From Azolla caroliniana (lineage: Eukaryota; Plantae; Polypodiophyta): a DNA stretch of 37,622 bases. The notes beneath the pieces are model-generated. The model was not told the origin of the DNA, did not search any database, and saw only the letters and a list, made by a program, of their open reading frames with translations. Below are positions 8,676-32,910 of the stretch, one piece after another (within the stretch, counting starts at the first letter, position 1; each line of letters begins with the position of its first letter). The stretch spans positions 1-37,622 of the forward strand of contig JBHGNT010000298.1 in the NCBI GenBank assembly GCA_043228905.1. Direction: 5' to 3'. Both the position numbers and the translations under genes were made by a program.

Positions 8676-8680
8676 AGGTA

Positions 8681-9112
8681 TGTTAAGAAAACGTAAAGAA
8701 GGCACTCGGGCTCTTCTTATGTGCGCGGCGGATCGTGGTGTGCTAGATCGTTTAGTGCTCAAACACAGACAGAGAAAGGAAAGGGGACTTACCTCTGTAG
8801 TAGCAAAATGGTTTTCTTCTATTACATGTAGAGCTCAACTTGCTCTCGTCAGTCTTCTGGTCTCACACTCTCTCTCAGAGTTCTCTCCTCACTATTCTCT
8901 GTTTTTTCTTACTGCTTCTTACTTCCTATTTTCTCTCACTTACTTTTACCTAAGTCATAAGTTATTACACATGCAGCTAATTAGCTGCCAGTAGCTAATT
9001 AGCTGTCACTAGCTAAATAGTTGTTTTACCTTTTTGTTCACTAGTAGCTAAATAGCTACTATAGCTTATTTCTCATAAGCATCACATACCATGTTGAGCT
9101 TGCTTCTCAACA
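8681..9112 (-). repeat. 3' LTR of element D (432 bp)
   Basis: Identical to 18940-19408 except one substitution and a 37-bp indel. Adjacent PPT CTCCCCCT at 9113-9120. Confidence 0.97.
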
Positions 9113-9202
9113 CTCCCCCTCAAGCTCAACTTATTCTTGCTTGAGGTTCTCTTCAATCTTCTTTTCCATTTTGCTTTTTAGCCATCTCATCAATGTCTAC
9201 AA

Positions 9203-9813
9203 TGTTGGGATTACGGTCCCTTCGGATGGGATGGTCGGATGTCGGAGATGAATGCCGACAAGCCCGGTTTCGGTTTCGGATCCGGATGACGAAGACCCCG
9301 GCTTCGGTGCCGGATGACGAATGTACCCGGAGAGCGATCCGGATGCAGGGACATATCCGTGAATATGTTCGCTATGGGCCCCTGAGGCCACAGTTGTAAA
9401 TAGCCCCAAAGTCATATGTGTATAAATATGACTTAGGGCAAACAGTTTTAGTGTTGCTTATCATTTTTCTGTTTTTCCACTCAAGAGGAGTGAAGAGGGA
9501 GCAGCCGTGAGACAGAGTGAGAGATAGAGCGCGAGAGAGGAAGAGGACGACGCCTCTGTGTATTTTCGCCGCCTGTGGCGAGGACAGCGAGCTCAAGGTC
9601 GTCGCCTTGGAGCTCGTCATTGTATACTTCTCTTGTATAGTGTCGTTTGGAGTCTTGTACTCCCGTGGTTTTTCCCATCTAGGGTTTTCCACGTTAATCC
9701 CTGTGTACTCGTGTGTTTCTCTCTTTTGGTTTCTATTTTCTGTTGCATTGATCCGCGATTACAAATGGTTGTGGCCGAGCGGTGAAGGTGAATCCAAGCG
9801 TTGATTCCCAACA
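9203..9813 (+). repeat. 5' LTR of element E
   Basis: Direct repeat of 13903-14513. TATAAATA at 9421-9428. Confidence 0.97.
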
Positions 9814-9816
9814 AAC

Positions 9817-9828
9817 TGGTATCAGAGC
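9817..9828 (+). promoter_or_regulatory. Primer binding site of E (tRNA-iMet)
   Basis: TGGTATCAGAGC, 3 nt after the LTR. This is the standard plant initiator-Met PBS. Confidence 0.95.
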
Positions 9829-9842
9829 GACTGTTGCAGAAA

Positions 9843-12800: not shown

Positions 12801-13892
12801 TGGTACCGGAAATTCGACTCCTTCATGACCGACGAAGGGTACCTCAAAACGCAGTCCGACCACTGCGTGTTTGTGAAGAAGTTCGAAGGAGGAGACTTCC
12901 TAATACTCCTCCTGTACGTGGACGACATGTTGATCGTCGGACGGGACCAGGTCAAGATACGGATGCTGAAGAAGGCTCTTCACCGAACCTTCTCAATGAA
13001 GGACCTGGGTTCGGCGAGGCAAATACTAGGGATGCACATCATCCGGGACCGGAAAAAGAAGCAGTTGTGGCTGTCACAGGAGAAGTACGTGACGAAGGTG
13101 CTTCACCGGTTCAACATGTCGGAAGCAAGACCGGTCGGATCGACCCTCCCGGCAAACTGCAAGCTGTCCAGCAAGCAAAGTCCCAAGACAAAGGCTGAAA
13201 AGGAGGATATGATGAAAGTGCCGTATGCCTCAGCCGTCGGGAGCTTGATGTACGCCATGGTGTGTACGAGGCCGGACATCGGATATGCAGTCGGAGTGGT
13301 GAGCCGGTACATGAGCAATCCCGGCAAAGAGCATTGGAACGCGGTCAAGTGGATACTCCGATACCTGAAGGGCACAGCGAATGTGTGCCTCCGATTCGGC
13401 TCCGATAAACCCGAACTCGACGGTTTCACCGATTCGGATATGTCGGCTGATACAGATACCAGCCGGTCCACATCAGGGTATGTGATGACGTATGCAGGGG
13501 GAGCTGTTTCGTGGCAGTCGAGGCTGCAGAAGACGGTTGCGTTGTCAACCACGGAGGCGGAGTACATGGCGGCTGTTGAAGCCGGCAAGGAAATAATATG
13601 GATGAAGGACTTCATTAGAGAGCTCGGTATCCGGCAGGAGGAGTACCAACTCTACTGCGACAGTCAGAGTGCAATCCACCTTGCGAAGAACGCGGCCTAT
13701 CACTCCCGGACGAAGCACATCCAGCGAAGATATCACTGGATCCGGGAAAGGATAGAAGACAAGGAGTTCGTGCTGACAAAGATCCACACGGACGAAAATG
13801 GGTCGGATATGCTGACCAAGGTCCTCACACCCGACAAGCTGGAAGCATGCCGGAAGAGGATCGGATTGGAGAGACATCCCATGCCGAAGTGA
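9843..13892 (+). CDS. Element E gag-pol polyprotein (1349 aa from ATG 9843): gag, CCHC knuckle, protease, integrase, RT, RNase H
   Basis: Uninterrupted ORF with NYADWKIKMEDLL, CFHCGKPGHFRKNC, WVVDSGASFH, VHTDVC/FIDDHSR/DNGGEY/NGLAERMN, QMDVKTAFLHG, LYVDDML, FTDSD and RTKHI. Confidence 0.96.
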   Translation: MEGGGSGQPMMMVLNAQNYADWKIKMEDLLIVRDLYEPIDRSEIPKGVLESEWKLLNRKAVATIRQYVDVSVLQHVANDTNAYEMWKKLSGLYERKNALNRTSLMRKIVNLKYRDGESMVEHVSTFMGFVNQLAAIKFPLEDAMQAIILMCTLPESWENLVVTLSTSCTEDNLSLQTVKTSILNEEARRRDKEPASDPKMLFTESDRGRQWNRSPQRREKSGTRSQSRGRPTCFHCGKPGHFRKNCRHYRKDNGTDNTDSKKSPERNGAYRGATDRNGSDRRGQDRKGTTALAASEEEIMLITEEGELNVAGDETTWVVDSGASFHLTPERRYFSSYTAGERGCVRMGNEGTCRIAGIGDVWLTTPTGCKMLLKDVRHVPEVRLNLISAGRLDDEGYTGSIRNGVMKFSKGSLIVARARKINTLYLMNARLCPEELNVAADTAGELWHKRLCHMSEKGMKRLAEDNLIPVKHVHLEKCTDCLAGKQNRTSFHSRPPTRRSAPLELVHTDVCQVETKSHGGAQYFVTFIDDHSRRLWTAPMKTKDQVLSVFKELHARVERESGKKLKAIRADNGGEYRGQFQEYCRSKGIRLEFTVPKTPELNGLAERMNRTIMERVRSMLAHAKLPKGFWAEAMSTATYVINRSPSVPLDGDTPQRVWTGREVSYRHLKVFGCLAYVHVAKDRRGKLDPKTRPCIFLGYGDDEFGYRVWDPVDKKIFRSRTLADWESEKKMKSSKSTGEDKLYEEQSRPARDRLALEDPAEDGEETEPAEEDENDTGTGPDPEMDSDEEESEEPVTEAPKRRYPQRERRAPRRFPEPEHVLLTDEGEPESFEEAKHDTQSRRWLSAMQDEMDSLHENHTYELVELPKGKRALRNKWVFKLKPGDAGKPLRYKARIVVKGFQQKKGVDFDEIFAPVVKMTSIRTVLSIAASMDLEVEQMDVKTAFLHGDLDEEIYMQQPEGFEKKGKEHLVCRLKKSLYGLKQAPRQWYRKFDSFMTDEGYLKTQSDHCVFVKKFEGGDFLILLLYVDDMLIVGRDQVKIRMLKKALHRTFSMKDLGSARQILGMHIIRDRKKKQLWLSQEKYVTKVLHRFNMSEARPVGSTLPANCKLSSKQSPKTKAEKEDMMKVPYASAVGSLMYAMVCTRPDIGYAVGVVSRYMSNPGKEHWNAVKWILRYLKGTANVCLRFGSDKPELDGFTDSDMSADTDTSRSTSGYVMTYAGGAVSWQSRLQKTVALSTTEAEYMAAVEAGKEIIWMKDFIRELGIRQEEYQLYCDSQSAIHLAKNAAYHSRTKHIQRRYHWIRERIEDKEFVLTKIHTDENGSDMLTKVLTPDKLEACRKRIGLERHPMPK

Positions 13893-13902
13893 AGGGGGAG
13901 TT

Positions 13903-14513
13903 TGTTGGGATTACGGTCCCTTCGGATGGGATGGTCGGATGTCGGAGATGAATGCCGACAAGCCCGGTTTCGGTTTCGGATCCGGATGACGAAGACCCCG
14001 GCTTCGGTGCCGGATGACGAATGTACCCGGAGAGCGATCCGGATGCAGGGACATATCCGTGAATATGTTCGCTATGGGCCCCTGAGGCCACAGTTGTAAA
14101 TAGCCCCAAAGTCATATGTGTATAAATATGACTTAGGGCAAACAGTTTTAGTGTTGCTTATCATTTTTCTGTTTTTCCACTCAAGAGGAGTGAAGAGGGA
14201 GCAGCCGTGAGACAGAGTGAGAGATAGAGCGCGAGAGAGGAAGAGGACGACGCCTCTGTGTATTTCCGCCGCATGTGGCGAGGACAGCGAGCTCAAGGTC
14301 GTCGCCTTGGAGCTCGTCATTGTATACTTCTCTTGTATAGTGTCGTTTGGAGTCTTGTACTCCCGTGGTTTTTCCCATCTAGGGTTTTCCACGTTAATCC
14401 CTGTGTACTCGTGTGTTTCTCTCTTTTGGTTTCTATTTTCTGCTGCATTGATCCGCGATTACAAACGGTTGTGGCCGAGCGGTGAAGGTGAATCCAAGCG
14501 TTGATTCCCAACA
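13903..14513 (+). repeat. 3' LTR of element E
   Basis: Direct repeat of 9203-9813, preceded by the PPT. Confidence 0.97.
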
Positions 14514-17500
14514 TACAACTTCCATCATGTTCCGAAACTGTGTATGCTTTTCCACACTCAATCCCTTTGTGAGAATATCAGCAACCTGCTGATTTGTATT
14601 CACATACACCAGATCAACTTCTCCTTCAATCACTTTTTCTCTAACAAAGTGATAATGCACTTCAATGTGCTTTGTTCTTGCATGGAACACAGGGTTCTTT
14701 GCAAGTTGAATGCTGCTCATGTTGTCACACCAGATTGTGACAGTACCGTCTATATACTCTCCCAAATCAGCAAGCAATCTTCTAATCCATACATCTTCAC
14801 AAGTGGCTATGGCAGCTCCTCTGTACTCAGCTTCAGTACTAGACAATGCAACAGTAGCCTGTTTCTTGCTACTCCATGAAATACCTGCACTTCCCAATGT
14901 AAAGATATATCCACTTGTGGATCTCCTGTCTGTTTGGCTTCCAGCCCAATCAGCATCTGTATATCCTTCCAGATTTATGTCCAAATCAGCCCTGTAAAAC
15001 AATCCATAGTTCTGAGTAGCTTTTACATACCTCAGAATTCTTCTAATGCAGTCCAAATGTGGCTTTGTTGGCTGTTGCATAAACTGGCTGACTAATCCAA
15101 CAGCATAGCTCAAATCAGGTCTTGTTATAGTCAAATAAATAAGGCTGCCCACCATAGACCTGTACATGTTTACATCTTCTATCTTGGCTCCCAAATCAGC
15201 CCTCAACTTGCAGTTTTTATCAAGTGGTACAGCAATAGGTTTGCATCCAAGCATACCATACTTTTTCAACATAGTTGTTGCATACTATTTTTGCAACATA
15301 CATATACCACTTTCAGATCTGATGATTTCAATACCAAGAAAATATCTCAGATCTCCCAAATCTTTCATATGAAACTGCATTTCCAGATTTTTTTTCAACT
15401 TTCTTATTTCATCCACGGAATCTCCTCCAATAATCAAATCATCTACATAAATCAGAATAATAACAATGCAATCATTTTCACTTTTTACATACAAAGAAGG
15501 ATCAGCTTTTGACATTTTGAAACCAAGATTTTTCAGAGAATCTGAAAGTTCTCTGTGCCATGCTCTTGGTGCCTGTTTCAGTCCATAGAGAGCTTTTTTC
15601 AGCTTACATACATAATCAGGATGTTTCTTATCTTCAAAACCTGGTGGTTGACTCATATACACTTCTTCTTCCAAGTTACCATGTAAAAAGGCATTTTTTA
15701 CATCCATGTGATGCAAAATCTATTTTCTAGCTGCTCCTACAGCAAGTAGTGTTCTCAAGGTTGCCATCTTTGCAACCGGTGCAAAAGTCTCATCATAATC
15801 AATCCCTTGCATCTGAGCATATCCTTTTGCAACCAATCTTGCTTTATGTCTACTTACATTCCCATTGGAGTCATGCTTTGTCTTGTAGACCCATTTGCAG
15901 CCTACCACATTTTTCTCTTTTGGTAACTTCACTAAATCCCACGTTTTGTTCTCAGCCAATGCATCAATCTCTTCTTGCATTGCATCCATCCATTTCTTCT
16001 CAGATTTTGCTTCTTCAAAGCTGTTTGGGTCAGGGATCTGTACCACCTTAGACATATATGCATAGTGCATAGCCATATATGTATCATACCCAAATCTTTC
16101 CACAGTCTTTTTCTCTCTATCTGATCTTCTCAGTTTCTGATTTGCATTCTTTATTGCCTTTTCCATACCAGGGATTTTCATTTCCTGTATTCCAAGGAAA
16201 TCATCCAAAGACATATCTGAATCTTCATCTTCCATGTTTTTTGATAGGTCATCTGGGATTTCATACTCTGGCATTTTCTGTTTTCCTTTTTTGTCATCAG
16301 ATTTTTTCTGTCCAGTTTTTCCACTCCATGAATTTGAATCAGATTTACCATCTGAGCTTTTTGATGGTCCAGAACATTCTGTTGATGTTGGACTTTGCTG
16401 TCCAGCCTTGTCTCCATCTCTGTGACAGTCTTCTACATTTTCTGATCTGTCTTTGTCTTCATTCTGACAGTCTTCATCAGTCTCTAGATTCTGTTTTGGG
16501 CTGTACCAACTAGCCAACTCATCAAATATCACATCTCGACTTGTCACAATCTTTTTAGTCACAGGGTTATAACATCTGTACCCTTTTTGTTCTTCTGAAT
16601 ATCCAACAAAGATACATTTTTCTGCTTTTGGATCCAACTTACTTCTTACTTCTGCAGGCACATGTACATATGCAAGGCATCCAAACACTTTCAAGTGTTG
16701 TAAGCTAGGCTTCCTGCCATAAAAACACTCTTCAGGAGTTGCCTCATGTACTCCTGATGTAATACATCTATTTAAAATGTAATTTGCTGTATTTACAGCT
16801 TCTGCCCAATAGTATAATGGCATGTTCTTCTCAGTCATCATTGCCCTTGCTATGTTCACCAAAGTTCTGTTTTTCCTCTCAGCAACTCCATTTTGCTGTG
16901 GAGTATATCGGCATGTGAACTGTCTTCTTATTCCCTGATTACACAAAAAATCAGAAAATTCATTGGAGAAATACTCTCCTCCTCCATCAGATCTCAAACA
17001 TTTTATCCTTGTACCAGCCTGCTTTTCTACCATGCATTTAAACTTACGAAAACAGTCAAATACTTCACTTTTCTCCTTCATGAAGTACACCCATGTCTTT
17101 CGTGAACAATCATCAATAAATGTAACATAAAATCTGCATCCACCAATAGATGCATTCTTTGTTGGTCCCCATACATCCGTATGTACCAAATCCAACAAAT
17201 TTTTACTTACATGTCTCTCATGAGGGAATGGCAACCTGTTTTGCTTACCATATTGACATGCTTCACATACTTTTCCCATTTCACACTTTTTCAAGTTTGG
17301 CAGTCCAGCCACTGCATCTTTTCTCAACATATTCTTTAATGTTTGCATACTTATATGGCCAATCCTTTTATGCCACATTTCCACATCTGAGATTACACTC
17401 GTTCCATTTGCAAACATGGCTGAAATCTGTTTGGGCATTTCTACATCCAAGATAAACATTCTTCCTTGTCTCTTCCCTTTTGCAATGAGCTTCCCATTCT

Positions 17501-18794
17501 TTTCTATATAGCATCCACTTGGCTTAAACTTTACTTGCATACCTTGCTCTACTATCTGTCCAACAGAAATCAGATTCTTAGCAAGATTTGGAACATGCAT
17601 CACATCCAACATATACTTGGTTTTTCCTCTTTCTTCCCACAATGGGATATCTCCAACATGTTTTATTTGGTGAGTTGTGTCATCACCTGTTTGTACATAA
17701 CCAGGAACCTCTGGTTCTCTTAAACTCTCAAACCAATTTGCATGTCCAGTCATATGGTTAGATGCCCCCGAGTCTACATACCACGTAAACTCTTCATTAC
17801 ATTTCTGTGAGCTTTCAGCCACTGCTGCTATCTCATGTTGCACTACAAAAACACCTTCCTTTTCGCAATCTTCACTAGTAGAGGCATAGTTACTCTGTTG
17901 TCCTTTTCCTCTTTTCTCATCATTTTGTTTCTTGTAACATTCAGCCTGTGTATGGCCTGGTTTACCACAATACCAGCAGCCATCATCATTTACATAAGTT
18001 TGCTTACCTCTACCTCGGTTGCTCCCCCTGCCTCTGTTGTTGTTTCCTCCTCTATGAGCTTGTTGTCCTCTTCCTTGAAAGCCATTATTATTGGTTCTTC
18101 CTGAGCCAAATCTTCCATGGCCTCTTCCTCGGCCTCTTCCGGCATTATTATAGAGGGCTTGCCCCTCGTTCTCTGAGTTTCCTTTATTTGCATCATCCAT
18201 CTGATTCCTTTCCTCTACCACAAGCATTGAGACCAGATCTGAAAAACTTGGGATACTATCCCTTGTGAGCATAGAAGTTTTAAAACTCTTGTATTGAGGT
18301 CCTAAGCCTCTTAAGCATATTTCCACTTTGTCATCATCTTCTATCTTCACATTGATAGAAGCAAGTGATTCACATATACTCTTGATTTTTAGGGCATATT
18401 CATTTATTGACATCTTACCTTTTTCTAAGGTATTTAGCTCAGTCTTCAACTGTAGCTTTCTAGCTTTTGTGTTTACTGCAAACAGTTTTACCAAACTGTC
18501 CCAAGCTTCTTTTGGGAGCATAGCATCCTGTATGTGCCCAAGCATCGAATCTGAGATGCTAAGTGAGAGCCAATGCATTACCTTCCTTGCCCCTTGATTC
18601 CAATCTTTGAATGCTTTAATCTGTGCTGCTGTGGCATTTTCTTCTGGGATCTCTGGAGCCTCTTCTAGGTCTCCTTCAATGTAATCCCAGTATCCTTTCC
18701 CCATCAGAAAGTTTGTCATTCTGAATTTCCACGCCGGGAAATTGTTTTTATCTAATTTCTCTGTGACCATTTGGCCTACATTCTCTGCAGCCAT
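14514..18794 (-). pseudogene. Element D gag-pol (one frame, two premature TAG stops; last codons continue at 9197->9153 beyond E)
   Basis: ORFs 15720-18794, 15285-15716 and <15272 share a frame and are separated by TAG at 15720 and 15285. Motifs [59 protein letters not shown]-terminus ...MMEVV|DIDEMAKKQNGKED* ends at 9153. Confidence 0.94.
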
Positions 18795-18927
18795 TTTTTT
18801 TTTCTTCCAAAAACCAGGGTTTTGCTTTAGTTACTTCAACAAGTAACTTTCTGATTTCTGATAAGCAAACAGAGAAATACCTTTCTCAGATCTATGCACT
18901 TTTGTACTCTTCTTTATGAGCAACTCT

Positions 18928-18939
18928 GCTCTGATACCA
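18928..18939 (-). promoter_or_regulatory. Primer binding site of D (tRNA-iMet)
   Basis: The + strand GCTCTGATACCA abuts the LTR at 18940. Confidence 0.95.
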
Positions 18940-19408
18940 TGTTAAGAAAACGTAAAGAAGGCACTCGGGCTCTTCTTATGTGCGCGGCGGATCGTGGTGT
19001 GCTAGATCGTTTAGTGCTCAAACACAGACAGAGAAAGGAAAGGGGACTTACCTCTGTAGTAGCAAAATGGTTTTCTTCTATTACATGTAGAGCTCAACTT
19101 GCTCTCGTCAATCTTCTGGTCTCACACTCTCTCTCAGAGTTCTCTCCTCACTATTCTCTGTTTTTTCTTACTGCTTCTTACTTCCTATTTTCTCTCACTT
19201 ACTTTTACCTAAGTCATAAGTTATTACACATGCAGCTAATTAGCTGCCAGTAGCTAATTAGCTGTCAGTCGCTAAATAGCTGTTCACTAGCTAATTAGCT
19301 GTCACTAGCTAAATAGTTGTTTTACCTTTTTGTTCACTAGTAGCTAAATAGCTACTATAGCTTATTTCTCATAAGCATCACATACCATGTTGAGCTTGCT
19401 TCTCAACA
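18940..19408 (-). repeat. 5' LTR of element D (469 bp)
   Basis: Direct repeat of 8681-9112 with 37 extra bp in the AGCTAATTAGCT array. Confidence 0.97.
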
Positions 19409-19413
19409 AGGTA

Positions 19414-20483
19414 CACATCCGCACAAGCCCGATCGGAGTCCTCATGGTTGTAATGTCCCGGCTGTCGATCGCCAACTGGAATTGGTCATATCCGGAGTAG
19501 AGATCGCCAATGGAGTAGATGGACCGGCCCGCAAACGCTTCGGCAAATTCGTCCACGCTCGGACCGATTCCGGCATTTCGAATTGTCACCTTGTTGACGG
19601 GTTGAAGATCTTGGATGAATCGCAATGATCCATTCTTCTTCGGCACCGTGAACCACCTATTGGAATAAGGAGCATTCGACGGTTCTAGAATTCCCATACT
19701 CACCTTCTCCTTTAAGAGCTCGATCAGCTTCGGAAGGTGTGCTCTCGGAACCGGTATCGGTTTCAAATTCCAAGGCACATGAGGCACCGTGAAGATCACC
19801 ATTGGCTCTATAACCTTTGGGTCGGCACATCCGATTTCTCGTGGGAAGAATGCGAAAGCCTTCCCATGTCTCTCAAGCATATCGCGAAACATTCGCTCCT
19901 CTTCAGGGAGAAGGAAATCCTCCTTTCCAACTCGTAGCTTCCCCTTCGTCTCTTTGGTGAAGTCATGACCTATCTTCTTCGGATCTCTTAAGCTTGGATC
20001 GTTAGCGACTTCCTTCATCTTTTGCCAGCTATCTTCCGGTAGCGGAACCGCAACTGGCTTGATCTTCTTATCCACCATTTTATATTTCGTGTTGATGTCA
20101 GCTTCCTTCATCGAGATGTCACGACGGTATTCATCGATGATAGCGTACATGTTGACGGAGTTAACCGAAATCACGCGTTGGCTGTGAAGATAGCTCAAGT
20201 CCACGACGTCCTCGATTTCGCCGATGGTGTCGTTAAATGAGGCTTCTTCCATAATATGAGTCACGAACTCTCCTTCTTCTATTATGTTCTCTTCTTTCAG
20301 CATCTTCTCGAATTCTTGTATCCGGCGCTTGTGCTTCTTGTCGGGTAATACTAGTTTACATGCGCCACTAGGTGTGACACATGTTGCTTCTCCTTGCAAT
20401 CCACGCGCTCTTCTTTCTTGTGGGGTCTTGTGATTGCTCGGACTATTTGTGCCCCATGCTTCAATAGTCCGCTCTAAAAATCC
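19414..20483 (-). pseudogene. Element C pol, proximal part (linker and RT N-terminus), in the -1 frame relative to gag-protease
   Basis: PSNAPYSNRWFTVPKKNGSLRFIQDL and IGDLYSGYDQF. The frame is open from the GGATTTT site at 20483-20477 to the D insertion. Confidence 0.9.
20421..20483 (-). promoter_or_regulatory. Putative -1 programmed ribosomal frameshift signal of element C
   Basis: G GAT TTT TAG, 5-nt spacer, stem CGGACTATT/AATAGTCCG. Loop TGGGG is complementary to downstream CCCCA. Confidence 0.75.
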
Positions 20484-22668
20484 GAGGATTCGCCTCCGAG
20501 ACTATCTCGATTCCTTTCATGATTGGCTCGCACCGTTAGGAATTGGACCGATCTTTGGTTGTCAAGACTCTTTATTCGTGCGAAGGCTGCTCCATTATCG
20601 AACACTTTGGTCTCCATCCGAGATGATGTGATATAAGGTTGCCCTAGGATGACAGGATGCGACGCCGATTCTTGTACGAAGAAGTGTTGTTCCATCTCCA
20701 CATCCCCGATCGTGACTTTAACATTGGGACAAGCTCCGTACAAGTCCTCCGTAGACTTTGTTGCCGCGCGAATCTTCCATCCGTGGTTTGTATTGATTGG
20801 CCATCTTCCCTTTTTGTAGAAGTCGGTTGACATGAGGTTGATCTCCGAGCCGTGGTCGATCAAGGCTACGACAGTCTCTTTCTTCTCCCCGATCTTCACC
20901 GTGCCGTTGTCGCTCGTGCCCAATGAGGTCGAGTGTAGTGGTTGTCCACCATATCTTCATCGATTTCGTCTCTTGCCATCGTTATGGCATTCGTTTTTTC
21001 TTTCTGCGGCTTCTCTTCTTCCTCGTCCGATTGTTGTCTCTTTCTCTTTACAAGGTCCACGATCGTGTCATGGAACTCCTTCTTCGTAATGCCAAGCAAT
21101 TCCCTCAAGGACAAAGTTACATGGCTATCAAGAACTCGTTCTTCGAGAATCTTCTTTAGGTCCGTCGTCTGCTCTATGTCCGACCTTAGCTTATAGGTAG
21201 GTATGGTCCTTGTCCTCCGAGCGGGGTCTTCGACACCAACCTTCACGGGCCGAACCGTTTCTTCAACTCGTATGCTCGGCTCCTCTTTTCGGCTTGATTC
21301 TCGTTCCTCCATTTGTAAAGGTCGACTCGTCTCCGCATCGTCCTTCTTTTTCGCGTTCCTTGTTTCATGTCTTTTTGATGGCCCTTGCTCTTCTATTCTT
21401 TTTTTCTTTTCTTCGACGAACACCTCGTGGTTGTCGCACATCACCTCTGCGAGTATGGTGTTGTCGTCCACCGGATCCGACCACCCGGTTATGCTCTGCA
21501 CGCTTCGGTCCGCAAGCTCTACCTCGTTCGATGTGATTTTTCCCTTCTTCTCATATTCGAGAACGGAAGTCCAAAACTTTGCTCCCGCTCTAGCAGCTTC
21601 AGTCTTGTCTTTCCCGACTCTTATTCCGGCCGACGCAACATAGTGCATCGCATCCACATGAGTCGCATCGGCATCCTCCATAGATCTCTTCATTCCTCCT
21701 CTTCCGAAATTCACCCGTAGGGGTCTTCTAGTCTCGCTTGAGCAGATCATGTTGTCCTCTATGTATACGATATTTTGTCGAATCGCCTCTCGAAGGCTCG
21801 CACAATCCCTTCTCATGTGGTCCATGCTATCGCACCACACGCATCTAAAGGGTTCTTTTCCTTTAGGGCCCCGACGATTCATGTTGGCTAGCGTGACCTT
21901 CTCGAACTTCTTCGCTAGCTCTTCAATGATGTCGTCATCAATCTTCTTTTCTTCCACGTTACTTTGTCTTGGCGGCTCAGCTACTTTCGGCGGTCTTGCT
22001 TTCTCCGTGGTAGTCGGTCCCGTCAAGTCGGTGTCATCAACCCATTGGCGACACTTGTCGAGCCTATTGCATGCCCGCTTCACCGCGATCCAGTCCGCTA
22101 CGAGCCCATTTGCTTGGGTATCATCTTCGAGAAGAGTCCCCAACTCCCGTCTATCCTTTATGTCCACGGCCTTCAAGAAGTTCAAAGTCTTGTCCTCTTC
22201 AAGCAACACTTGGTCCGTATTGGGGAGACGACTAAACATCTGGTCGAATTCGTCGTACACCCTCGAGACGCTCATCTTCTTATTCTTCTTCTCTATCCAC
22301 TTCATCAGGGCATGTCGAGTCATCCTCGTTGAGTCTTCAGTCACGAACTCCGCTAGTATCGTTTTCTCGAACTCGGACCATGTTGTCTTTCCTTCTTGAA
22401 GCTCGATGACGCGTCTTTGGATGTTGTTGGCGACAACTCTCTTGAAGCTTGCGATTTGACGTGCCTCGGACACGTCCCTTTGATTCATCTCCCTCTTATA
22501 TGCATCAAGGAACTTCATAACGTTCCTTCCATCGAATTGGCCCTCGAGCTCTACGACACGATCGACAGCCTTCTCCACGCTCGCGTCGTTGTCCCGAGAT
22601 CTCATCATTTGCTCGACGATTAGCATCATCCTTTCGAGCTCTCCCGCTTGGTTGCTTGAGGACGCCAT
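20474..22668 (-). pseudogene. Element C gag and aspartic protease
   Basis: Gag ORF from ATG 22668 with knuckle CVWCDSMDHMRRDC. Protease ALIDHGSEINLM...VILGQPY in 20474-20923. One frameshift near 20905 is probably a small deletion. Confidence 0.88.
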
Positions 22669-22708
22669 CTCCAAGTATTAATCTCGACTTGATCCTTCCT
22701 ACCGCCTC

Positions 22709-22726
22709 TTCACGTCGGGTTCACCA
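22709..22726 (-). promoter_or_regulatory. Primer binding site of C, complementary to tRNA-Trp
   Basis: The + strand TTCACGTCGGGTTCACCA equals the 3' 18 nt of plant cytosolic tRNA-Trp as I recall it. It lies 8 nt from the LTR. Confidence 0.8.
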
Positions 22727-22734
22727 CTTAATTA

Positions 22735-23781
22735 TGTCGTGAAGATCCGTCACTACGTGCGGATCGTGAGGCGGAACCGCCGGGGTTTTGGACCAGAAGG
22801 ATTTAGATTCGATACAAGCTTTGGCGAGGAAGTACTTAAGATAGATTGGGAAAAAGAGAAGATGAGATTACACGATTGATTTCAAAACGAATTTCTTCCT
22901 CTTAATTTTCATACCAAAAAAACCGTGTTTTTCTCCTCTCCCTTCCCTCTTTTATAGATGCTCTCATGCATATGATGCATGTGAGGGTACAAGACATGCA
23001 TAAATTGCATGTTTGCCATTTGGCGCTTAAGTATTACATGTGGTGCATGCTAACCATGTCACTCATTTTAGCACTCATGGATGAGAATTTACATGTAAAA
23101 GTACAATGATAGAAATATAATTTTAACTAAATACTATGGCTTAATGGTAAGCCATTTGACTCCTAACTTGGAGGTGCAAGGTTTGAATCCACACTTGCCC
23201 TCCTTGTATATGTAAATATGTATATATATTTATATATTTATTTTATCTAGTCGCCGGTTCGCCGGATGTCGCCGATGGATGCCGACGCCGAATACCGATG
23301 CCGACGTCGACGCCGGATGCCGCCGTCGGATACCAGTGCCGACGCCGCATGCCGCCGCCGGATTGTGGTCGGATGCCATCGGATCACCGGCTCCATCGCC
23401 GGTCCGGTTTTGGTTGGCCAAAACCCTTTTCGAGTAGCTAGCCACCTCCACTCTAAGTTCAAGTTACCTTGAACTCTCTATGCTCCACACATAGACACAA
23501 AGATAATATCTTTTGCTCCACCTTATATATGATGAGAGCCGTATTTGTCGTGCCTATGTGGGATATCTCACAATTTTCTCTTTTCTTTTCACAAACTTTA
23601 TACCCTCATATCTTGACATTTAGTTATCCATTTCTCGTGTAATAAAGTACATTCGAAACCTCCATCATTTTGTACTTAGATATTAAAAATGTTTTCTTCA
23701 CAATTATTGTATTATGTGATTCATACTCGATTTCGTACGTTTTATGGGATTTTCACACTATTGCCGAAAATCTTCACGACA
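22735..23781 (-). repeat. 5' LTR of element C (1047 bp)
   Basis: 12-bp terminal inverted repeats. The first 259 bp repeat 6213-6471. Flanked by PBS and TSD. Minus-strand TATAAAA at ~22950-22956. Confidence 0.9.
23135..23198 (+). promoter_or_regulatory. tRNA-like Pol III A-box/B-box module in the LTR of element C
   Basis: A-box TGGCTTAATGG 23137-23147 with D-arm-like hairpin GGCTT-AATGGT-AAGCC, then GGAGGT, then B-box GGTTTGAATCC 23180-23190. An AT-rich tail with TTTT follows at ~23242-23245. Confidence 0.62.
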
Positions 23782-24592: not shown

Positions 24593-25014
24593 TGTGAATG
24601 TTAATGTGCGGAAGCGTCAGACAGAACCGGCTCAGCCAGATAGTAACAGAAAATGAGATAAAGGTTTAATGGAAAAGCTTAAAACACAAAGGAGACACAG
24701 AGAGCAGAACATAAAACTATATTCAAAAATTAACTCTAAAACTCTGTACATACAACGTGCTAAACAACACTATTTATACAAGTCCATAAAGGACTGACAT
24801 AAGTATTGACAGGTACTTCAATGCTCACACGTGCGACTGACACTAACTACGAGACAATGATTACCTAGTAGTCTAGGCTACTACTAGGCTTCCATTACCC
24901 ACTCGAATCCGGCTCTCCGATCCGGCTCCCCGATTTGGCCGGTTGTTTTCAGATACCGATCTGGCTCAGGCTTATTCAGCCAATCTAGATCCGGTTGAGC
25001 TTGCTCACTCAACA
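24593..25014 (-). repeat. 3' LTR of element F (422 bp)
   Basis: Direct repeat of 31605-32038, followed on the + strand by CTCCCCCT (PPT). Confidence 0.93.
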
Positions 25015-25619
25015 CTCCCCCTCAAGCTCAACTTGAGGTCGGATCGTGGTGTTAGTGTCCGCGGCAGCCGGTTCTTCTACCCGGCTCCTTTTCGCGTTGC
25101 TCCGCCTCACTCACGTTCCTCGTCCAATTCGGTCTTGTTTGTCGTGACCCTTCTGGTTCTGCGTACCTCGATCTCCTCGGTCGGCTTGTCTGCTCAGCAG
25201 GCCCATTTTAGCTCCCTTGTTGTTGCGCCTCCAGCACTTGTCGACCTGTCGGTTCCTTCCTGTTGGCATCGACTTCCGCTCCGTTTGTGTCCGCTTGGCC
25301 TTTAGTTGACCCGACTTCTCCGAACCTTGAACCAAATCGGTTTCCTTCGATTTGTTCCAGCTCTTATCTGAGTTGGTGTTCTCCAACTTGTGTTATGGTT
25401 TCAAGCCCTTCACCACACCAGACTACGTCCGGTTCTTGGCCGTTTTCTTTCCGTCGGCTCTATCCTTCTTGATTCTGCCACCGTTGCCGCTTGTTCCGAC
25501 CTTTCCGGATGTGCCAACTCCTTCGGACGGCTCGGCTTCCTTTTTCCTCTTGTCTCCCCCTTTGTTGGTTCTTTCTTCCTCTCCGGCTCCTTGTTCGGTG
25601 CCATCTGTTCCCTTTCCTT

Positions 25620-28600
25620 TTCTCCCCCTCAAGTGCAGCACGACGAGATACTGAACACCAAGCATTTCGGTGAAGTGTTGCAATTTGTCCTATCCGAGCG
25701 GTTTGGTGAAGATATCGGCAATTTGCCGATCCGTCTGAACATACCGAAGTTCTACTTCATCACTCAAAATCCGTTCACGCACAAAGTGATAGTGGACTTC
25801 TATGTGCTTCGTCCGAGCATGGAACACGGGGTTCTTGGCGAGTTGAATGATGCTCATGTTGTCACAGTAGATCAGGATCGGGGTCGGTACCTCAATCCAT
25901 AGGTCTCGCAGTAGTCGCCAAAGCCAGATGGCTTCATAAGTGGCATTGGTAGCGCCCTGGTATTCAGCCTCAGTGCTCGATAGAGCCACTGTTGGCTACT
26001 TTTTGCTGCTCCACGCAACAACCGCGCTACCCAGAGAAAACATGTAACCGAAGGTGGATCGGCGATCCGATGCATCACCAGCCCAGTTGGCATCAGTATA
26101 TCTTACTAGCTTCCGAGCTATACTGTGTCGGTATAACAGTCCCCGGTCCTTCGTGCCACTCACATACCGAAGTATCCGGTGTGCGCACTAAAGGTGCTCG
26201 ACGGTTGGCTTCTGCATGAACTGGCTTATCACTCCGACCGGGTAACTGAGGTCGGGTTGAGTGATTGTCAAGTATATCAGGCTTCTGATGATTTGTCGGA
26301 ACCGTTTCTCATCGCAGGTCGGTCCAAAGTTGGGACAAATCTTCTAGTTCCAGTCCAAGGGTGTGGAGACAGGTCAGCACTCCGTCATACCAAACTTGTA
26401 CAACATATTCAACATATAGTGTCGTTGTGAGAGCAATATGCCGTCAGGGGTTCAGATCACCTCGATCCCGAGAAAATAATGAAGGTCCCCTAGGTCCTTC
26501 ATTTCAAATGCGTCCGATAGCTAGGACTTTACTCGGTCGATTTCATTGAGTTCGGGTCCGGTGATGACTTAATCATCAACATAAAGTAGGATGCAAACCG
26601 GACCGTTCGGACCTTGCCGAATGAACAACGACGAGTCGGATTTAGAGGTCACAAACCCCATCTTATGCAACTGGTGCATGATCTTTGCATTCCAAGCTCG
26701 AGGGGCTTGTTTCAGACCATAAAGCGACTTCTTGAGCTGGCACACCGCTGACTTGTTCATCTCCGACTGAAAACCGGGAGGTTGGATCATATAGACCCAT
26801 TCTTCAAGGTCACCTTGAAGAAACGCATTCTTCATGCCCATCTGGTGAAGACTCCACCCCCTTACCGCAACAACCGCCAGTACCACACGAACCGTCGTCA
26901 TCTTCGCTACTGGAGCGAAGGTCTCGTTGTAATCGATTCCCTCGGTCTGTGCGTATCCCTTCGCCACTAACCGGGACTTGTACCGATTAACCAAACCGTC
27001 GGCATTTTACTTTACCTTGTACACCCATTTGCAACCGATCGGTTTATAGTGTCGGGGAGGGTCAACGAGGTCCCATGTGTCATCGGCATCTAGTGTCCAC
27101 ATTTCTTCCTCCATAGCGGCACGCCAATTTGTGCCCTTTGTCGCTTCTACGTAGCTCTCCGGCTCACGCACTTCTGCCACCTTAGTCATGAACGCATAAT
27201 GATGCGCCATGTACTCATTGTACCCGTACTACGTAACGGGGTTCTTCAGGCGGGAAGACCGGCATAACTTGGTATTACCCGGTTTCGGACCCTTCTTGGC
27301 CAAGTCGGACGTCGTTCCCGAAGATCCGCCTTCATCCTTTCCGGAGTCGGATTCGCTCCGATCCGACTCAACGTTGCCGGTTTCGTATTCCGGCATCTTC
27401 TTCTTCCCCTTCTCTTTGCACGTGAACCGTCTCCTCGGTTCCTTGCGCGGGGAGAGCACGGAAGAGTCTCCACTATTCGCCGGTTCCTCATCTGACTAGT
27501 CATCCCGACTCAGCCGCTCATTCGGTCCACTTAGCCGGAATGAGATCGGACTCTCTTCTAGAGTGTTGAAGTCTTCATCTTCTACCTGGACCTCCTCGGG
27601 CTCACTAGCCTCATCTTTCGGAATCGGGTCTTCGTCAGAAGTTGGAGTCGGTAAGGAGTACCATGATGCTGTCTCATCAAACTCGACATCTCGGCTTACT
27701 CGGACCTGCTTAGTCCAGGGGTTATAGCACTTATACCCCTTCTGCTCATGCCAGTAACTAACTAGAATGCACTTCTCCGACTTCGGATCCAGCTTCCTCC
27801 GCTTCTCATCCAGTACATGCACATATGCTATGCTACTGAATATCTGAAGGTGTCTCAAATTCGGCTTTCGCCCGAAATACAACTCATGTGCTGACACCTT
27901 GTCACCGATCCGGTTTTGGATGTAGACGACCATCTGGACCGCCTCGACCCAGTAGAAATGGGGCATGCTCTTCTCCTTCAGTATTGCCCTTGTCGCGTCG
28001 ATAATCGACCGGTTCTTCCTTTCGGCCACACCATTTTGCTCCGGTGTGTACCTGTAGTTGAATTCTCTCCGAATTCCGTTCTATTGCAGACAACTGTTGA
28101 ATTGGCTGGAAAAGTATTCCTTCCCGCCATCCGACCGCATGCACTTGATCTTCCTCTCCGTTTCCCGTTCAACCAAGATTTGAAGGTTCTGGAAACACTC
28201 GAAGACTTCGCTCTTCCTCTTGATGAGGTAGATCCACATGTGCCGGTTGTAGTCATCGATGAAGGAGACGAAATACCGACTCCCGCCAAGACTAACGTCT
28301 TGTGCCGGTCCCCATACATCCGAATGGATTAAATCGAGCTTGTTATGGCTCCGGTTTCGATTGGTGGGGAATGGAAGCCGATGTCGCTTCCCGAGTTGGC
28401 AGGCTTCACAAATTCGGCAAACCGAAAACAACTTGTTTCGATTGAAAGTCTCAAAGCCTCTGATAATTGACGTGGCCGATCCTCTTGTGCCACAGGTCGA
28501 TGTCCGATTCGACCTTCTGCCCTTTCGCAAACATAGCAATGTTGACATCATTAGTGTTGAGGATGAACATCCTCCCGTCTCTGTGCCCTTGCGCAATCCA

Positions 28601-28796
28601 GAAGTAGTCTTCTTTATCGAGTTAGCCTTGTGCTTCATCACGAAGGCTGGCCCTTTACCGATTTCCCAGTTCTGGATCCTTCCGCGTAGTGTGAGCTTTG
28701 CCGGTTCTCCCGATCGGTTTTGTCGAATTCGGATTTGTCCGAATCGGCGCGCTTCTTCCAGCACTCGCTTTCTCTGTGGCCCTTTTTGCCACAGTA
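25620..28796 (-). pseudogene. Element F pol pseudogene (integrase, RT, RNase H); protease deleted
   Basis: CEACQLGK, IHSDVWGP, SDGGKEY, NGVAERKN, RLVAKGY, LYVDD, ALSSTEAEY and HARTKHIEVHYHF. Many stops and frameshifts. No DSGAS protease motif between the knuckle and GAG-pre-integrase. Confidence 0.92.
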
Positions 28797-31331
28797 CTAG
28801 CATTCCGTGTCGGCCTTTCCTTGTCGGTTCTCGGCGCCGCTTTGACTCCCCCTGCTTGTGGAGGGTCCGGAACTGCTGTCGGCACAACCTCTGTGCCTCC
28901 GGTCCTGCTCTTTTCGGCCGCCTCCATTGCGTGTTGACCCACCTCGTCCACCACGTCCATGGGGCCGATCTATCCCCGTGTACAACATCTGGTCGTCTGA
29001 TTGAGTGGTCCTTGACCCACTTGCATGGTTTTCTTCGACCATCAGCATCGATTGCAAGTCAAATAAGGACGATGGTTTCTCCCAGGTGCAGATCGCTATT
29101 CGGATTGGCCCATACCTTTGCGCTAGACCATTGAGGCAGATTTGTACCATCTCATCTTCGTCCACCGTCACGTTGATGGACCCGAGTGTGTCACAAATCT
29201 CCTTTATCTTGGTGGTGTAGTCCATAACCGACATGTCTCTTTGCCGGATGTTGTTCAGCTCTTGTCGGACCTGCAACTTACGAGCCATGGTACTTGCGAC
29301 GAAAATCTTCCGTAGATTTTCCCAGGCCTCCTTCGACGTCTTTGCATCCTTGATGTAGTTGAGCATCTGATCATGCACACCGGACACGAGACAGTACAGT
29401 ACCCGACTCACTCCTTCTTCGACCATCAGCATCGATTGCAAGTCAAATAAGGACGATGGTTTCTCCCAGGTGCAGATCGCTATTCGGATTGGCCCATACC
29501 TTTGCGCTAGACCATTGAGGTAGATTTGTACCATCTCATCTTCGTCCACCGTCACGTTGATGGACCCGAGTGTGTCACAAATCTCCTTTATCTTGGTGGT
29601 GTAGTCCATAACCGACATGTCTCTTTGCCGGATGTTGTTCAGCTCTTGTCGGACCTGCAACTTACGAGCCATGGTACTTGCGACGAAAATCTTCCGTAGA
29701 TTTTCCCAGGCCTCCTTCGACGTCTTTGCATCCTTGATGTAGTTGAGCATCTGATCATGCACACCGGACACGAGACAGTACAGTACCCGACTCACTCCTT
29801 CTTCGACCATCAGCATCGATTGCAAGTCAAATAAGGACGATGGTTTCTCCCAGGTGCAGATCGCTATTCGGATTGGCCCATACCTTTGCGCTAGACCATT
29901 GAGGTAGATTTGTACCATCTCATCTTCGTCCACCGTCACGTTGATGGACCCGAGTGTGTCACAAATCTCCTTTATCTTGGTGGTGTAGTCCATAACCGAC
30001 ATGTCTCTTTGCCGGATGTTGTTCAGCTCTTGTCGGACCTGCAACTTACGAGCCATGGTACTTGCGACGAAAATCTTCCGTAGATTTTCCCAGGCCTCCT
30101 TCGACGTCTTTGCATCCTTGATGTAGTTGAGCATCTGATCATGCACACCGGACACGAGACAGTACAGTACCCGACTCACTCCTTCTTCGACCATCAGCAT
30201 CGATTGCAAGTCAAATAAGGACGATGGTTTCTCCCAGGTGCAGATCGCTATTCGGATTGGCCCATACCTTTGCGCTAGACCATTGAGGCAGATTTGTACC
30301 ATCTCATCTTCGTCCACCGTCACGTTGATGGACCCGAGTGTGTCACAAATCTCCTTTATCTTGGTGGTGTAGTCCATAACCGACATGTCTCTTTGCCGGA
30401 TGTTGTTCAGCTCTTGTCGGACCTGCAACTTACGAGCCATGGTACTTGCGACGAAAATCTTCCGTAGATTTTCCCAGGCCTCCTTCGACGTCTTTGCATC
30501 CTTGATGTAGTTGAGCATCTGATCATGCACACCGGACACGAGACAGTACAGTACCCGACTCACTCCTTCTTCGACCATCAGCATCGATTGCAAGTCAAAT
30601 AAGGACGATGGTTTCTCCCAGGTGCAGATCGCTATTCGGATTGGCCCATACCTTTGCGCTAGACCATTGAGGTAGATTTGTACCATCTCATCTTCGTCCA
30701 CCGTCACGTTGATGGACCCGAGTGTGTCACAAATCTCCTTTATCTTGGTGGTGTAGTCCATAACCGACATGTCTCTTTGCCGGATGTTGTTCAGCTCTTG
30801 TCGGACCTGCAACTTACGAGCCATGGTACTTGCGACGAAAATCTTCCGTAGATTTTCCCAGGCCTCCTTCGACGTCTTTGCATCCTTGATGTAGTTGAGC
30901 ATCTGATCATGCACACCGGACACGAGACAGTACAGTACCCGACTCACTCCTTCTTCGACCATCAGCATCGATTGCAAGTCAAATAAGGACGATGGTTTCT
31001 CCCAGGTGCAGATCGCTATTCGGATTGGCCCATACCTTTGCGCTAGACCATTGAGGCAGATTTGTACCATCTCATCTTCGTCCACCGTCACGTTGATGGA
31101 CCCGAGTGTGTCACAAATCTCCTTTATCTTGGTGGTGTAGTCCATAACCGACATGTCTCTTTGCCGGATGTTGTTCAGCTCTTGTCGGACCTGCAACTTA
31201 CGAGCCATGGTACTTGCGACGAAAATCTTCCGTAGATTTTCCCAGGCCTCCTTCGACGTCTTTGCATCCTTGATGTAGTTGAGCATCTGATCATGCACAC
31301 CGGACACGAGACAGTACAGTACCCGACTCAC
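28797..31331 (-). CDS. 844-codon ORF: six tandem 128-aa copia Gag capsid-region (Retrotran_gag_2/UBN2-like) repeats plus an RGG-rich tail; expression unproven
   Basis: Open frame across all six units. First ATG at 31286. It is frameshifted from the native gag N-terminus (31510-31350) and ends at a TAG replacing the Trp of the zinc knuckle. Confidence 0.5.
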   Translation of the reverse strand: MSRVLYCLVSGVHDQMLNYIKDAKTSKEAWENLRKIFVASTMARKLQVRQELNNIRQRDMSVMDYTTKIKEICDTLGSINVTVDEDEMVQICLNGLAQRYGPIRIAICTWEKPSSLFDLQSMLMVEEGVSRVLYCLVSGVHDQMLNYIKDAKTSKEAWENLRKIFVASTMARKLQVRQELNNIRQRDMSVMDYTTKIKEICDTLGSINVTVDEDEMVQIYLNGLAQRYGPIRIAICTWEKPSSLFDLQSMLMVEEGVSRVLYCLVSGVHDQMLNYIKDAKTSKEAWENLRKIFVASTMARKLQVRQELNNIRQRDMSVMDYTTKIKEICDTLGSINVTVDEDEMVQICLNGLAQRYGPIRIAICTWEKPSSLFDLQSMLMVEEGVSRVLYCLVSGVHDQMLNYIKDAKTSKEAWENLRKIFVASTMARKLQVRQELNNIRQRDMSVMDYTTKIKEICDTLGSINVTVDEDEMVQIYLNGLAQRYGPIRIAICTWEKPSSLFDLQSMLMVEEGVSRVLYCLVSGVHDQMLNYIKDAKTSKEAWENLRKIFVASTMARKLQVRQELNNIRQRDMSVMDYTTKIKEICDTLGSINVTVDEDEMVQIYLNGLAQRYGPIRIAICTWEKPSSLFDLQSMLMVEEGVSRVLYCLVSGVHDQMLNYIKDAKTSKEAWENLRKIFVASTMARKLQVRQELNNIRQRDMSVMDYTTKIKEICDTLGSINVTVDEDEMVQICLNGLAQRYGPIRIAICTWEKPSSLFDLQSMLMVEENHASGSRTTQSDDQMLYTGIDRPHGRGGRGGSTRNGGGRKEQDRRHRGCADSSSGPSTSRGSQSGAENRQGKADTEC

Positions 31332-31334
31332 TCC
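29031..31334. repeat. Tandem array of 6 x 384 bp
   Basis: Units start TTCTTCGACC at 29031, 29415, 29799, 30183, 30567 and 30951. The only difference seen is GAGGcAGA/GAGGtAGA, in the pattern C,T,T,C,T,C. Confidence 0.98.
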
Positions 31335-31604
31335 TTGCTCCCATACCGGAAGTCTTTGTGTGATGGCTCCAGTGCTGCTTCATTTGTTCCTTCCATGAAG
31401 CTCCAATATCCATGCCCCAATAGGTACTGGTGCATTTTATATGACCAAGACGCATAGTTGCTCCGGTCGAGCTTCTCTGTTGGAAGTGAACTCGCCATTC
31501 CTCTTTCCATATCTTCTCTCTATTTGTTGTTACTAGGTTCTAGGGTTCGTCTACAGAAGCAAATGTCGACTGCAGAGGTTCTCAACCCTCGTGCTCTGAT
31601 ACTA

Positions 31605-32038
31605 TGTGAATGTTAATGTGCGGAAGCATTAGATAGAACCGGCTCAGCTGGATAGCAACAAAAAATGAGATGAAGGTTTAATGGAAAAGCTTAAAACACA
31701 AAGGAGACACAGAGAGCAGAACATAAAACTATATTCAAAAATTAACTCTAAAACTCTATACATACAACGTGCTAAACAACACTATTTATACAAGTCCATA
31801 AAGGACTGACAGAAGTACTAACAGGTACTTCAATGCTCACACGTGCGACTGACACTGACTATGAGACAATGATTACCTAGTAGTCTAGGCTACTACTAGG
31901 CTTTCGATTCCCACTCGAATCCGGCTCTCCGATTCAGTCAGTTGTTTCCGGATACCGATCCGGCTCATCCTTCCGGATGTCGATCCGGCTCAGGCTTATT
32001 CAGTCGATCCGGATCCGGTTGAGCTTGCTCGCTCAACA
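31605..32038 (-). repeat. 5' LTR of element F (434 bp)
   Basis: Direct repeat of 24593-25014, adjacent to the PBS. Confidence 0.93.
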
Positions 32039-32910
32039 ATGCGCGTATGAGCGATAAACTTTCAGATTTTTTCAATAGCACTATTAAGCAAGGATGCCTA
32101 CTCTCACCAATTCTAATTGGTTTATGCATTGATGAAATTGAAAAAATGGTTTCCAAGTTTGTAAATGAATAAGTTGCAATTGGGAATGTTTTGTTATTAT
32201 GCTTTTGCTATATGCGGATGATGTAGTGTTTTTTGCAAATACTTTAGGAGATGCGCAAAAGCTTATGAAGGCATTGGAAAAAATTTGCATGCATACGAAA
32301 TTAAGTGTAAATAGCTCTAAAACAAAGATTGTGCTTGTGAAATGCCAAAAAAGAGATAAGCCATGCATATATACAATAATGTGCCACTTGAATGTGCGGA
32401 AAGCTTCAAATATCTTGGCCTTGAAGTTCCTTCAAATCATAGATTGAATGAATGTGCTACACGCCACTTAGAGGTGGGAAAGCGAGCATATTATGCATTT
32501 GAGAATACATGCAATCATGGAGATATTAAGTGTTGGGACCTCAAGAAATACCTTTTCGACACTTTGGTGACACTGGTGCTTGACTATGGGGTGGTAACAT
32601 CCCTAGATCTACTTGGAAAGAGTTTGAAAATGTCCAAAAACGTTTTCTTACAAAGTTTCTACAAGTCAAGAAACAAACATCATACATCTTCCTCCTCCTT
32701 GAGATGGGATCACTTCCCATTTGAGATCATGTCCATGGAAAGGGGTTGTTGAATACATATGCTTAAGGTTCAAAAAAGTCCCTCACATTGACTTCCTAGA
32801 ATCTCATGGGAAGCAAGGAAAAAGATCATAAAGATGCATAAAAGCAAATTTTTGTGTTCTAGTTGGATGCAATATATTAAAAAGTGGTTTGGTAGATGGG
32901 ATGCAACACC
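32039..32910 (+). pseudogene. RTE-like LINE reverse transcriptase fragment, right part (continues 24272-24592)
   Basis: IKQGCLLSPIL, LLLYADDVV, VNSSKTK and ESFKYLG motifs with stops and frameshifts. The right boundary is approximate. Confidence 0.85.

Follow-up and report, generated by a model that had tools for sequence, protein, structure and literature searches.

What is to be made of an open reading frame (ORF) of 844 codons that is built from six almost identical copies of a capsid segment and lies inside a retrotransposon that has otherwise fallen into decay? The question is raised by a locus of the fern Azolla caroliniana, at positions 28,797 to 31,334 of contig JBHGNT010000298.1 (GenBank assembly GCA_043228905.1), positions 1 to 37,622 of which were analysed and are called the window below. 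A first-pass annotation, made from the sequence alone, had proposed a covalent capsid hexamer or a restriction factor. The evidence presented here makes a plainer account quite probable: the array is a young tandem repeat of transposable-element (TE) origin, a minisatellite in the making, within a long-dead copia element, and it has no protein function.

A young six-unit array in a dead copia element

The one strong array that Tandem Repeats Finder (TRF) detected spans 29031-31336 and has 6.0 copies with a period of 384, 99% matches and a score of 4591, without indels. When each position was compared with the one 384 bp further on, only four mismatches were found across the array, all in one phase, and exact comparison of the units traced them to a sole variable site at unit offset 277, the remaining sites being identical. 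TRF and the unit comparison confirmed six 384-bp units with one Cys/Tyr difference, as had been claimed. The array and its units are arranged as follows:

29031..31334, minus strand: tandem array of six head-to-tail 384-bp units with 128 codons of copia Gag each (TRF, exact unit comparison, six PF14223 stretches)
31334-30951, 30950-30567, 30566-30183, 30182-29799, 29798-29415 and 29414-29031, minus strand: the six units in coding register
31057, 30673, 30289, 29905, 29521 and 29137, minus strand: the variable site, codon TGC (Cys) or TAC (Tyr)

In sense order the residues at the variable site read Cys-Tyr-Cys-Tyr-Tyr-Cys (C-Y-C-Y-Y-C), which on the plus strand corresponds to C/T in a CAG (CHG) context. 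Since all relatives have Cys here, the Tyr variant is the derived one. C>T change at CHG sites is the typical fate of methylated cytosines in plant TEs. The array measures 2306 bp, made up of six units plus a 2-bp AA that is common to the upstream flank and the unit end, and this AA is the microhomology at the founding junction of the array. The junction between units encodes the peptide ...LMVEEGVSRVLY..., and the array as observed is far beyond chance.

The non-periodic order C-Y-C-Y-Y-C of one real-looking C>T variant is unlike the usual collapse or stutter of an assembly, and the flanks on both sides are unique sequence, joined to the array cleanly and in register. These features make it unlikely that the assembler inflated or invented the copy number at a locus with a single unit or only a few. 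This alternative is the least improbable of those considered: assemblers are at their least dependable with repeats as alike as these units, and an exact look-up of the 829-aa product that starts at the first in-frame ATG found it not to be on record.

The host of the array is a minus-strand copia-type retrotransposon with long terminal repeats (LTRs), of which the following parts were recognized:

24593-32038, minus strand: host element
31605-32038, minus strand: 5' LTR, 434 bp, with a TATAAATA box near 31790
31593-31604, minus strand: primer-binding site (PBS) TAGTATCAGAGC, with one mismatch against the tRNA-iMet type
28615..28740, minus strand: site of an internal deletion (tblastn of the relative P0001 against the window)
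25651..28461, minus strand: remnant of integrase (IN), reverse transcriptase (RT) and RNase H (RH) with 12 in-frame stops, in another frame than the Gag ORF
24593-25014, minus strand: 3' LTR, 422 bp, preceded by the polypurine tract (PPT) GAGGGGGAG at 25015-25023

LTR pair, PBS, PPT and the order gag-IN-RT-RH, with IN placed before RT by collinear tblastn matches to copia polyproteins, mark it as a copia LTR retrotransposon from which the protease (PR) has been deleted. The element is dead, and as old and broken as had been supposed. Its LTRs differ by 34 substitutions (27 transitions) in 421 aligned sites with 14 gap columns, a Kimura two-parameter distance (K2P) of 0.087, and the flanking 5-mers CGCAT and TGCAC match at 3/5 positions. 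The mismatch in the PBS is relative to TGGTATCAGAGC, which we take to be the canonical tRNA-iMet-type sequence. About 100 residues including the aspartic protease motif are missing at 28740-28615, where residues 255-397 of P0001, the closest full relative (936 aa, from an ENA metagenome assembly), have no counterpart.

Unlike the LTRs, the units have scarcely diverged. The maximum divergence between them is 0.0026 (at most one of 384 sites), equal to 3% of the distance between the LTRs. Units of the same age as the element would each be expected to carry about 17 private changes (half of 0.087 x 384), whereas none or one was observed. Because the units are near-identical while the LTRs have diverged, the amplification is much younger than the insertion, in agreement with the earlier claim that it came long afterwards. 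Substitution rates commonly assumed for plants are 0.7-1.3e-8 per site per year. They suggest an LTR age of roughly 3-6 million years, a figure that depends on the assumed rates and is not a result, and on the same assumption the units would share a last common ancestor no older than a few per cent of this. The array did not arise at one stroke: when combinations of duplications, unequal exchanges and point changes were explored breadth-first, C-Y-C-Y-Y-C was reached after no fewer than five events, which means several rounds of growth rather than one burst. A rolling-circle origin from a single monomer was considered as well and does not fit the non-periodic C/Y order.

The state of the sequence before its amplification was assessed with relatives. 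A scan of metagenome contigs with one unit yielded 67 related loci, with identities that reach 87% in amino acids and 88.5% in nucleotides. The majority are short, of low coverage and stop-bearing themselves, which suggests that they represent plant DNA within those metagenome assemblies. Dozens of contigs with mostly degenerate copies of the copia family of the array, up to 88.5% identical in nucleotides, came from ENA assemblies ERZ1034375-ERZ1034427 (loci L002-L055), and genomic DNA of the source plant, or of a plant close to it, is probably present in these assemblies. With nine relatives as reference (eight related loci and the in-window copy at 5560-5943), the lineage-private changes common to all six units amount to 8 nonsynonymous and 2 synonymous ones, a ratio of nonsynonymous to synonymous changes per site (pN/pS) of about 1.1, and 8 of the 10 are C>T/G>A. 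The same count gave a pN/pS of 0.30-0.65 for four relatives. Judged by these changes, the decay of the sequence before amplification looks neutral and methylation-driven, the numbers being small and indicative of direction only. The units themselves, being identical, carry no readable signal of selection.

What the long open reading frame encodes

The reading frame that results from the array, and the lesions that bound it, are these:

28797-31331, minus strand: ORF of 844 codons, consisting of the six units and a 76-codon native Gly/Arg-rich linker, with its stop inside the zinc knuckle
28797-28799, minus strand: premature stop at the second position of the CCHC zinc knuckle, where the frame reads C*YCGKKGHRESEC
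31352..31510, minus strand: native Gag start ATG 31510 and first 53 codons, encoding the N-terminal arm and helix 1 of the N-terminal domain (NTD), by comparison with the intact relative L001

The in-frame ORF that ends at the zinc knuckle was borne out, with the qualification that 844 codons are counted from a bacterial-type GTG start and that 829 remain from the first in-frame ATG, at 31286. Its stop interrupts a CX2CX4HX4C knuckle, and its Gly/Arg-rich tail is the native linker between capsid (CA) and nucleocapsid, found in relatives too. Upstream, the frame is closed by a TGA at 31380-31382. A one-base frameshift near 31350 parts the native ATG 31510 from the array, as the first-pass annotation had noticed, and leaves this ATG at the head of a 60-codon upstream ORF (uORF). 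Eleven ATGs, that of native Gag with its uORF included, lie between the TATA-like box (about 31790) and ATG 31286. With ordinary scanning, such a leader would strongly disfavour translation of the long ORF, and the array is presumably not expressed. The caveats that had accompanied the functional proposal, namely the lost ATG and the one-in-three chance of keeping frame, turned out to be its stronger half.

Six stretches of the ORF match the Pfam family Retrotran_gag_2 (PF14223) with an E-value of 1e-111, and the match clears the curated cut-off of 27 bits. Of the 172 positions of the profile, 41-170 are represented in each unit. To interpret these limits, the intact Gag of relative L001 (L001:719-1558, 280 aa) was modelled from a 71-row alignment, with a mean pLDDT of 77. 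The model has helices at residues 19-33, 36-40, 57-70, 74-81, 86-98, 102-114, 122-138, 145-154, 158-169 and 176-192, followed by a disordered basic linker and then the zinc knuckle. Its best match in the PDB was the Drosophila Copia capsid (8vvw_A, E 5e-8, 182 columns), and further matches were PNMA2, the C-terminal domain (CTD) of the PEG10 capsid, and the CA-CTDs of Ty1 p22 and Drt2 (TM scores normalised to the target, 0.72-0.80). In Copia, residues 1-90 form the NTD and 91-186 the CTD, and the centre of the capsomer is formed by the NTDs (PMC11835246).

By sequence alignment, Copia residue 90 falls at about residue 99 of the L001 Gag, and the repeat unit corresponds to L001 residues 60-187. 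Of the NTD it keeps helices 2-4, entering helix 2 three residues after its start; about the first 50 of the 90 NTD residues, comprising the N-terminal arm, helix 1 and the loop behind it, are absent. In units 1-5 the whole CTD is present except for the last five residues of its final helix, which is joined directly to helix 2 of the next unit without a linker. The unit ends lie inside helices, and therefore the breakpoints ignore domain borders. The earlier description of the unit as the Gag core thus holds in part: it is copia Gag with a near-complete CTD, and it is not the whole core, the NTD being truncated. A tethered hexamer would be expected to need intact NTDs and a link from each CTD to the neighbouring NTD, whereas the NTDs of the units are truncated and no linker joins them. 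An AlphaFold model of two units was also obtained; its alignment rows covered one unit only, the second unit scored low, and the helix that it draws across the junction is untrustworthy.

The long frame is owed to a coincidence of two features of the unit, its freedom from stops and a length divisible by three. Elsewhere in the host element there are about 2.5-4 disabling lesions per kb; in Gag outside the unit, two were found in about 0.8 kb, a density comparable to that of Pol. An excess of stops in Pol over Gag was considered as a signal and rejected, 6 of the 12 Pol stops lying within about 380 nt, perhaps as the result of a local frame slip.

Searches for the same architecture and the weighing of explanations

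Neither two units in tandem nor the 24-nt junction, with up to four mismatches allowed, was found in any of the 67 related loci. A word search with the 844-aa ORF gave 12 matches with at most 21% query coverage and no multi-unit relative, a weak negative given the few proteins of this family in the database. An exhaustive search with one unit against 1.84 billion protein representatives returned 3219 matches at E<=1e-3. Among the best 150 of these, which were inspected, four had more than one matched stretch, and none was a diverged, maintained multi-capsid protein. A literature search for duplicated or tandem gag found nothing relevant.

Two of the candidates for a parallel are public spliced gene models, which were used as returned. 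One (P0133, MCO5611171.1), from the fern Adiantum nelumboides, contains three near-identical stretches of the Gag N-terminus. It was rejected as a parallel: its 87-kb gene model stitches dispersed copies together and is probably an annotation artefact joining dispersed TE copies. P0253 and P0184 were rejected as tandem amplifications too, one having two different Gags and the other being a rearranged fragment. The second gene model (P0135, UYV64973.1), from Cordylochernes scorpioides, reflects a real copia-derived tandem array, in which a Gag-bearing segment occurs five times with 96-100% identity. The array lies at L069:11300-23800 as a higher-order repeat of about 4.56 kb with alternating sub-spacing of 1.4 and 3.1 kb, and the gene model, of 2422 aa, combines five Gag domains with pieces of Pao and gypsy. 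Amplification of copia Gag pieces in tandem is thus a recurrent event that yields multi-Gag annotations; in the cases found, the copies are young and their repeat units are unlike that of Azolla.

These results bear on the functional proposal, by which the ORF would encode a Gag with several capsid domains, acting either as a dominant-negative restriction factor that poisons the lattices of active relatives or as an incipient domesticated gene. If true, it would be a plant analogue of Ty1 p22 and Drt2 with a one-step origin by tandem amplification. The open frame of 829-844 codons, the in-frame Met codons in every unit and the near-complete CA-CTD of each unit, a fold used by Ty1 p22/p18 and Drt2 (PMC8458377, PMC10951436), speak for it, yet it is very unlikely when set against the rest of the evidence. 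The native start is lost and ATG 31286 is preceded by the 11 upstream ATGs; the NTDs are truncated and unlinked; the evolution of the sequence before amplification appears neutral, and identical units show no selection; the junction is absent from all 67 related loci, and no maintained multi-CA protein stood among the best 150 of the 3219 matches; and the locus lies in a nest of TEs, inside its own decayed LTRs.

The families in the window whose poisoning had been suggested are only distantly related in this segment. The closest in-window relative of the amplified Gag, a second copia fragment, is 66% identical to it in amino acids and about 72% in nucleotides across the unit, another relative is 44% identical, and the youngest element shows no detectable match, whereas the restriction exerted by Ty1 CA-CTD is subfamily-specific, three residues of the interface being decisive (PMC12530519). 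For the proposal to hold, transcription would have to start in the decayed LTR or result from read-through, translation would have to begin at an internal ATG, and the multivalent CTDs of the fused polyprotein of partial NTDs and CTDs would have to bind and poison the capsid lattice of still-active members of the same copia family, a chain of events to which we give very little credence. The locus would bear on the origin of TE-derived restriction factors only if expression and inhibition in trans were demonstrated.

Three observations weigh against a repeat without function. The first is that the unit is free of stops: the chance of a clean 384-bp piece is estimated at 0.2-0.4, and with 1/3 for the frame the chance of preserving an ORF comes to about 0.1. 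In a TE-rich genome such an outcome, though not certain, is not rare, and a case selected for looking striking is unremarkable in this respect. The second concerns the CA-CTD, almost all of which is retained in each unit: in Ty1 p22/p18 and Drt2 this domain is the smallest inhibitory module (PMC8458377, PMC12530519). The third is that the related loci are short-read contigs, in which an array would collapse, yet these would still show the junction.

A recent repeat remains the explanation that we prefer, and the mechanism that we infer for it would run as follows. After its insertion the element would have been silenced and would have decayed, acquiring the frameshift, nonsense mutations, the protease deletion and a drift of C>T changes. 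Much later, an error of repair or replication may have rejoined a 384-bp Gag segment end to start across the AA microhomology, creating the first duplication. The growth to six copies and the reshuffling of the array could then be due to unequal sister-chromatid exchange, slippage or gene conversion, and a single C>T change at the CHG site would have arisen in the course of this expansion and spread with it. The long ORF would be an automatic by-product of a stop-free unit whose length is a multiple of three.

The converse order, in which a multi-Gag variant arose before insertion by template switching during reverse transcription, which can in general create internal duplications, and transposed as such, is extremely improbable: units as old as the LTRs would not be expected to carry none or one of some 17 private changes, changes of the decay type that mark this copy are common to all units, the junction occurs in no related locus, and full homogenisation by conversion, which could mimic the observed pattern, would itself be a recent event at the DNA level.

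Surroundings in the window and comparison with known systems

Taken as a whole, the window is made up of nested retrotransposons. No cellular genes were found in the scanned ORFs of the window, nor any tRNA genes by a tRNA scan of it. Apart from the host element, the window contains a three-level nest of LTR retrotransposons at 6213-22993 and a second copia fragment:

6213-6471 and 22735-22993: LTRs of the outer, gypsy-like element, 97.7% identical
20896-22674, minus strand: 592-codon ORF of the outer element, matching only DUF4100 (PF13352, E 3.5e-7) and presumably its Gag region
8680-9025 and 18939-19284: LTRs of the middle, nested copia element, 98.8% identical
15720-18794, minus strand: ORF of the middle element
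9203-9813 and 13903-14513: LTRs of the innermost, young copia element, 99.3% identical
9801-13892: intact 1363-codon Gag-Pol ORF of the innermost element
3956-6081, minus strand: second copia fragment, stop-bearing, 62-70% identical to P0001

The innermost Gag-Pol ORF is Tnt1-like and about 54% identical to named angiosperm elements. Both LTRs of the middle element contain an 18-bp tandem repeat, AGCTAATTAGCTGYCACT, with 2.6 copies at 8975-9020 and 4.8 at 19234-19320; copy number differs between the two LTRs, and short tandem repeats are therefore unstable elsewhere in the window too. Adjoining the 5' LTR of the host element on its outside, at 32199-32752 on the plus strand, two overlapping ORFs with a YADD-type reverse-transcriptase motif look like a fragment of the LINE type.

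Compared with capsid-derived proteins of known function, the Azolla units resemble Ty1 p22/p18 and Drt2 by homology, these being N-terminally truncated Gags of the Ty1/copia superfamily that retain the CA-CTD (PMC8458377, PMC10951436, PMC12530519). By contrast to the Azolla locus, a dead copy whose product would be six fused units of partial NTD and CTD, they are single CTD modules that come from a defined sub-genomic transcript or a domesticated locus and have demonstrated expression, activity and subfamily specificity. The selection or conservation that would be looked for in a restriction factor was not seen here, with a pN/pS of about 1.1 and a C>T bias, identical units and a junction absent from all 67 related loci. 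Domesticated Gags of the Arc, PNMA and PEG10 type, free-standing host genes that have shed LTRs and pol and keep an intact ORF with its ATG, differ as well: in Azolla the element's own LTRs and pol remnant still flank the array, and the native ATG is out of frame. The Drosophila Copia capsid (PDB 8vvw, 8s41; PMC11835246) has the same two-domain, all-helical CA fold as the L001 Gag model; its full NTD (1-90) stands at the capsomer centre, whereas the repeat unit corresponds to about Copia residues 51-178 only.

The array of Cordylochernes scorpioides is similar to that of Azolla in that near-identical repeats of a copia Gag segment are annotated as one multi-Gag protein. It differs in belonging to an animal and to an unrelated copia lineage (34% identity), in having a complex repeat with protease and RT pieces, and in that its ORF exists only after splicing. 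The Azolla array, like the gene models of the fern Adiantum nelumboides and the pseudoscorpion, carries a warning for annotation, namely that near-identical in-frame repeats in dead TEs give very long multi-domain ORFs that say nothing about function.

The closest likeness is to tandem repeats derived from LTR retrotransposons, known from the maize repeats CRM1TR and CRM4TR, the satellites of Lathyrus derived from the 3' untranslated region (UTR) of Ogre, and the 250-bp centromeric repeat of wheat and rye that is similar to the gag of cereba (PMC3648361, PMC7004042). The route proposed for these is a foundation by illegitimate recombination, followed by growth and homogenisation through unequal exchange or gene conversion (PMC3648361, PMC7004042). 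Like them, the Azolla array is a piece of a retrotransposon set head to tail in a TE-rich region, and its monomers are homologous to a TE. Unlike them, it has six copies at one locus in the window, neither the long arrays nor the many loci of a satellite proper being seen within the window and the 67 related loci, and its monomer comes from Gag-coding sequence rather than from LTR or UTR, is in frame and still lies inside the parent element. The locus offers a clean, datable snapshot of the first steps of a retrotransposon piece toward a tandem repeat: the founding junction displays its 2-bp microhomology, one marker site allows at least five later events to be followed, and the entire process is much more recent than the host element. 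It is of a known kind, that of TE-derived tandem repeats, and slightly unusual in being derived from coding sequence, in frame and caught very early.

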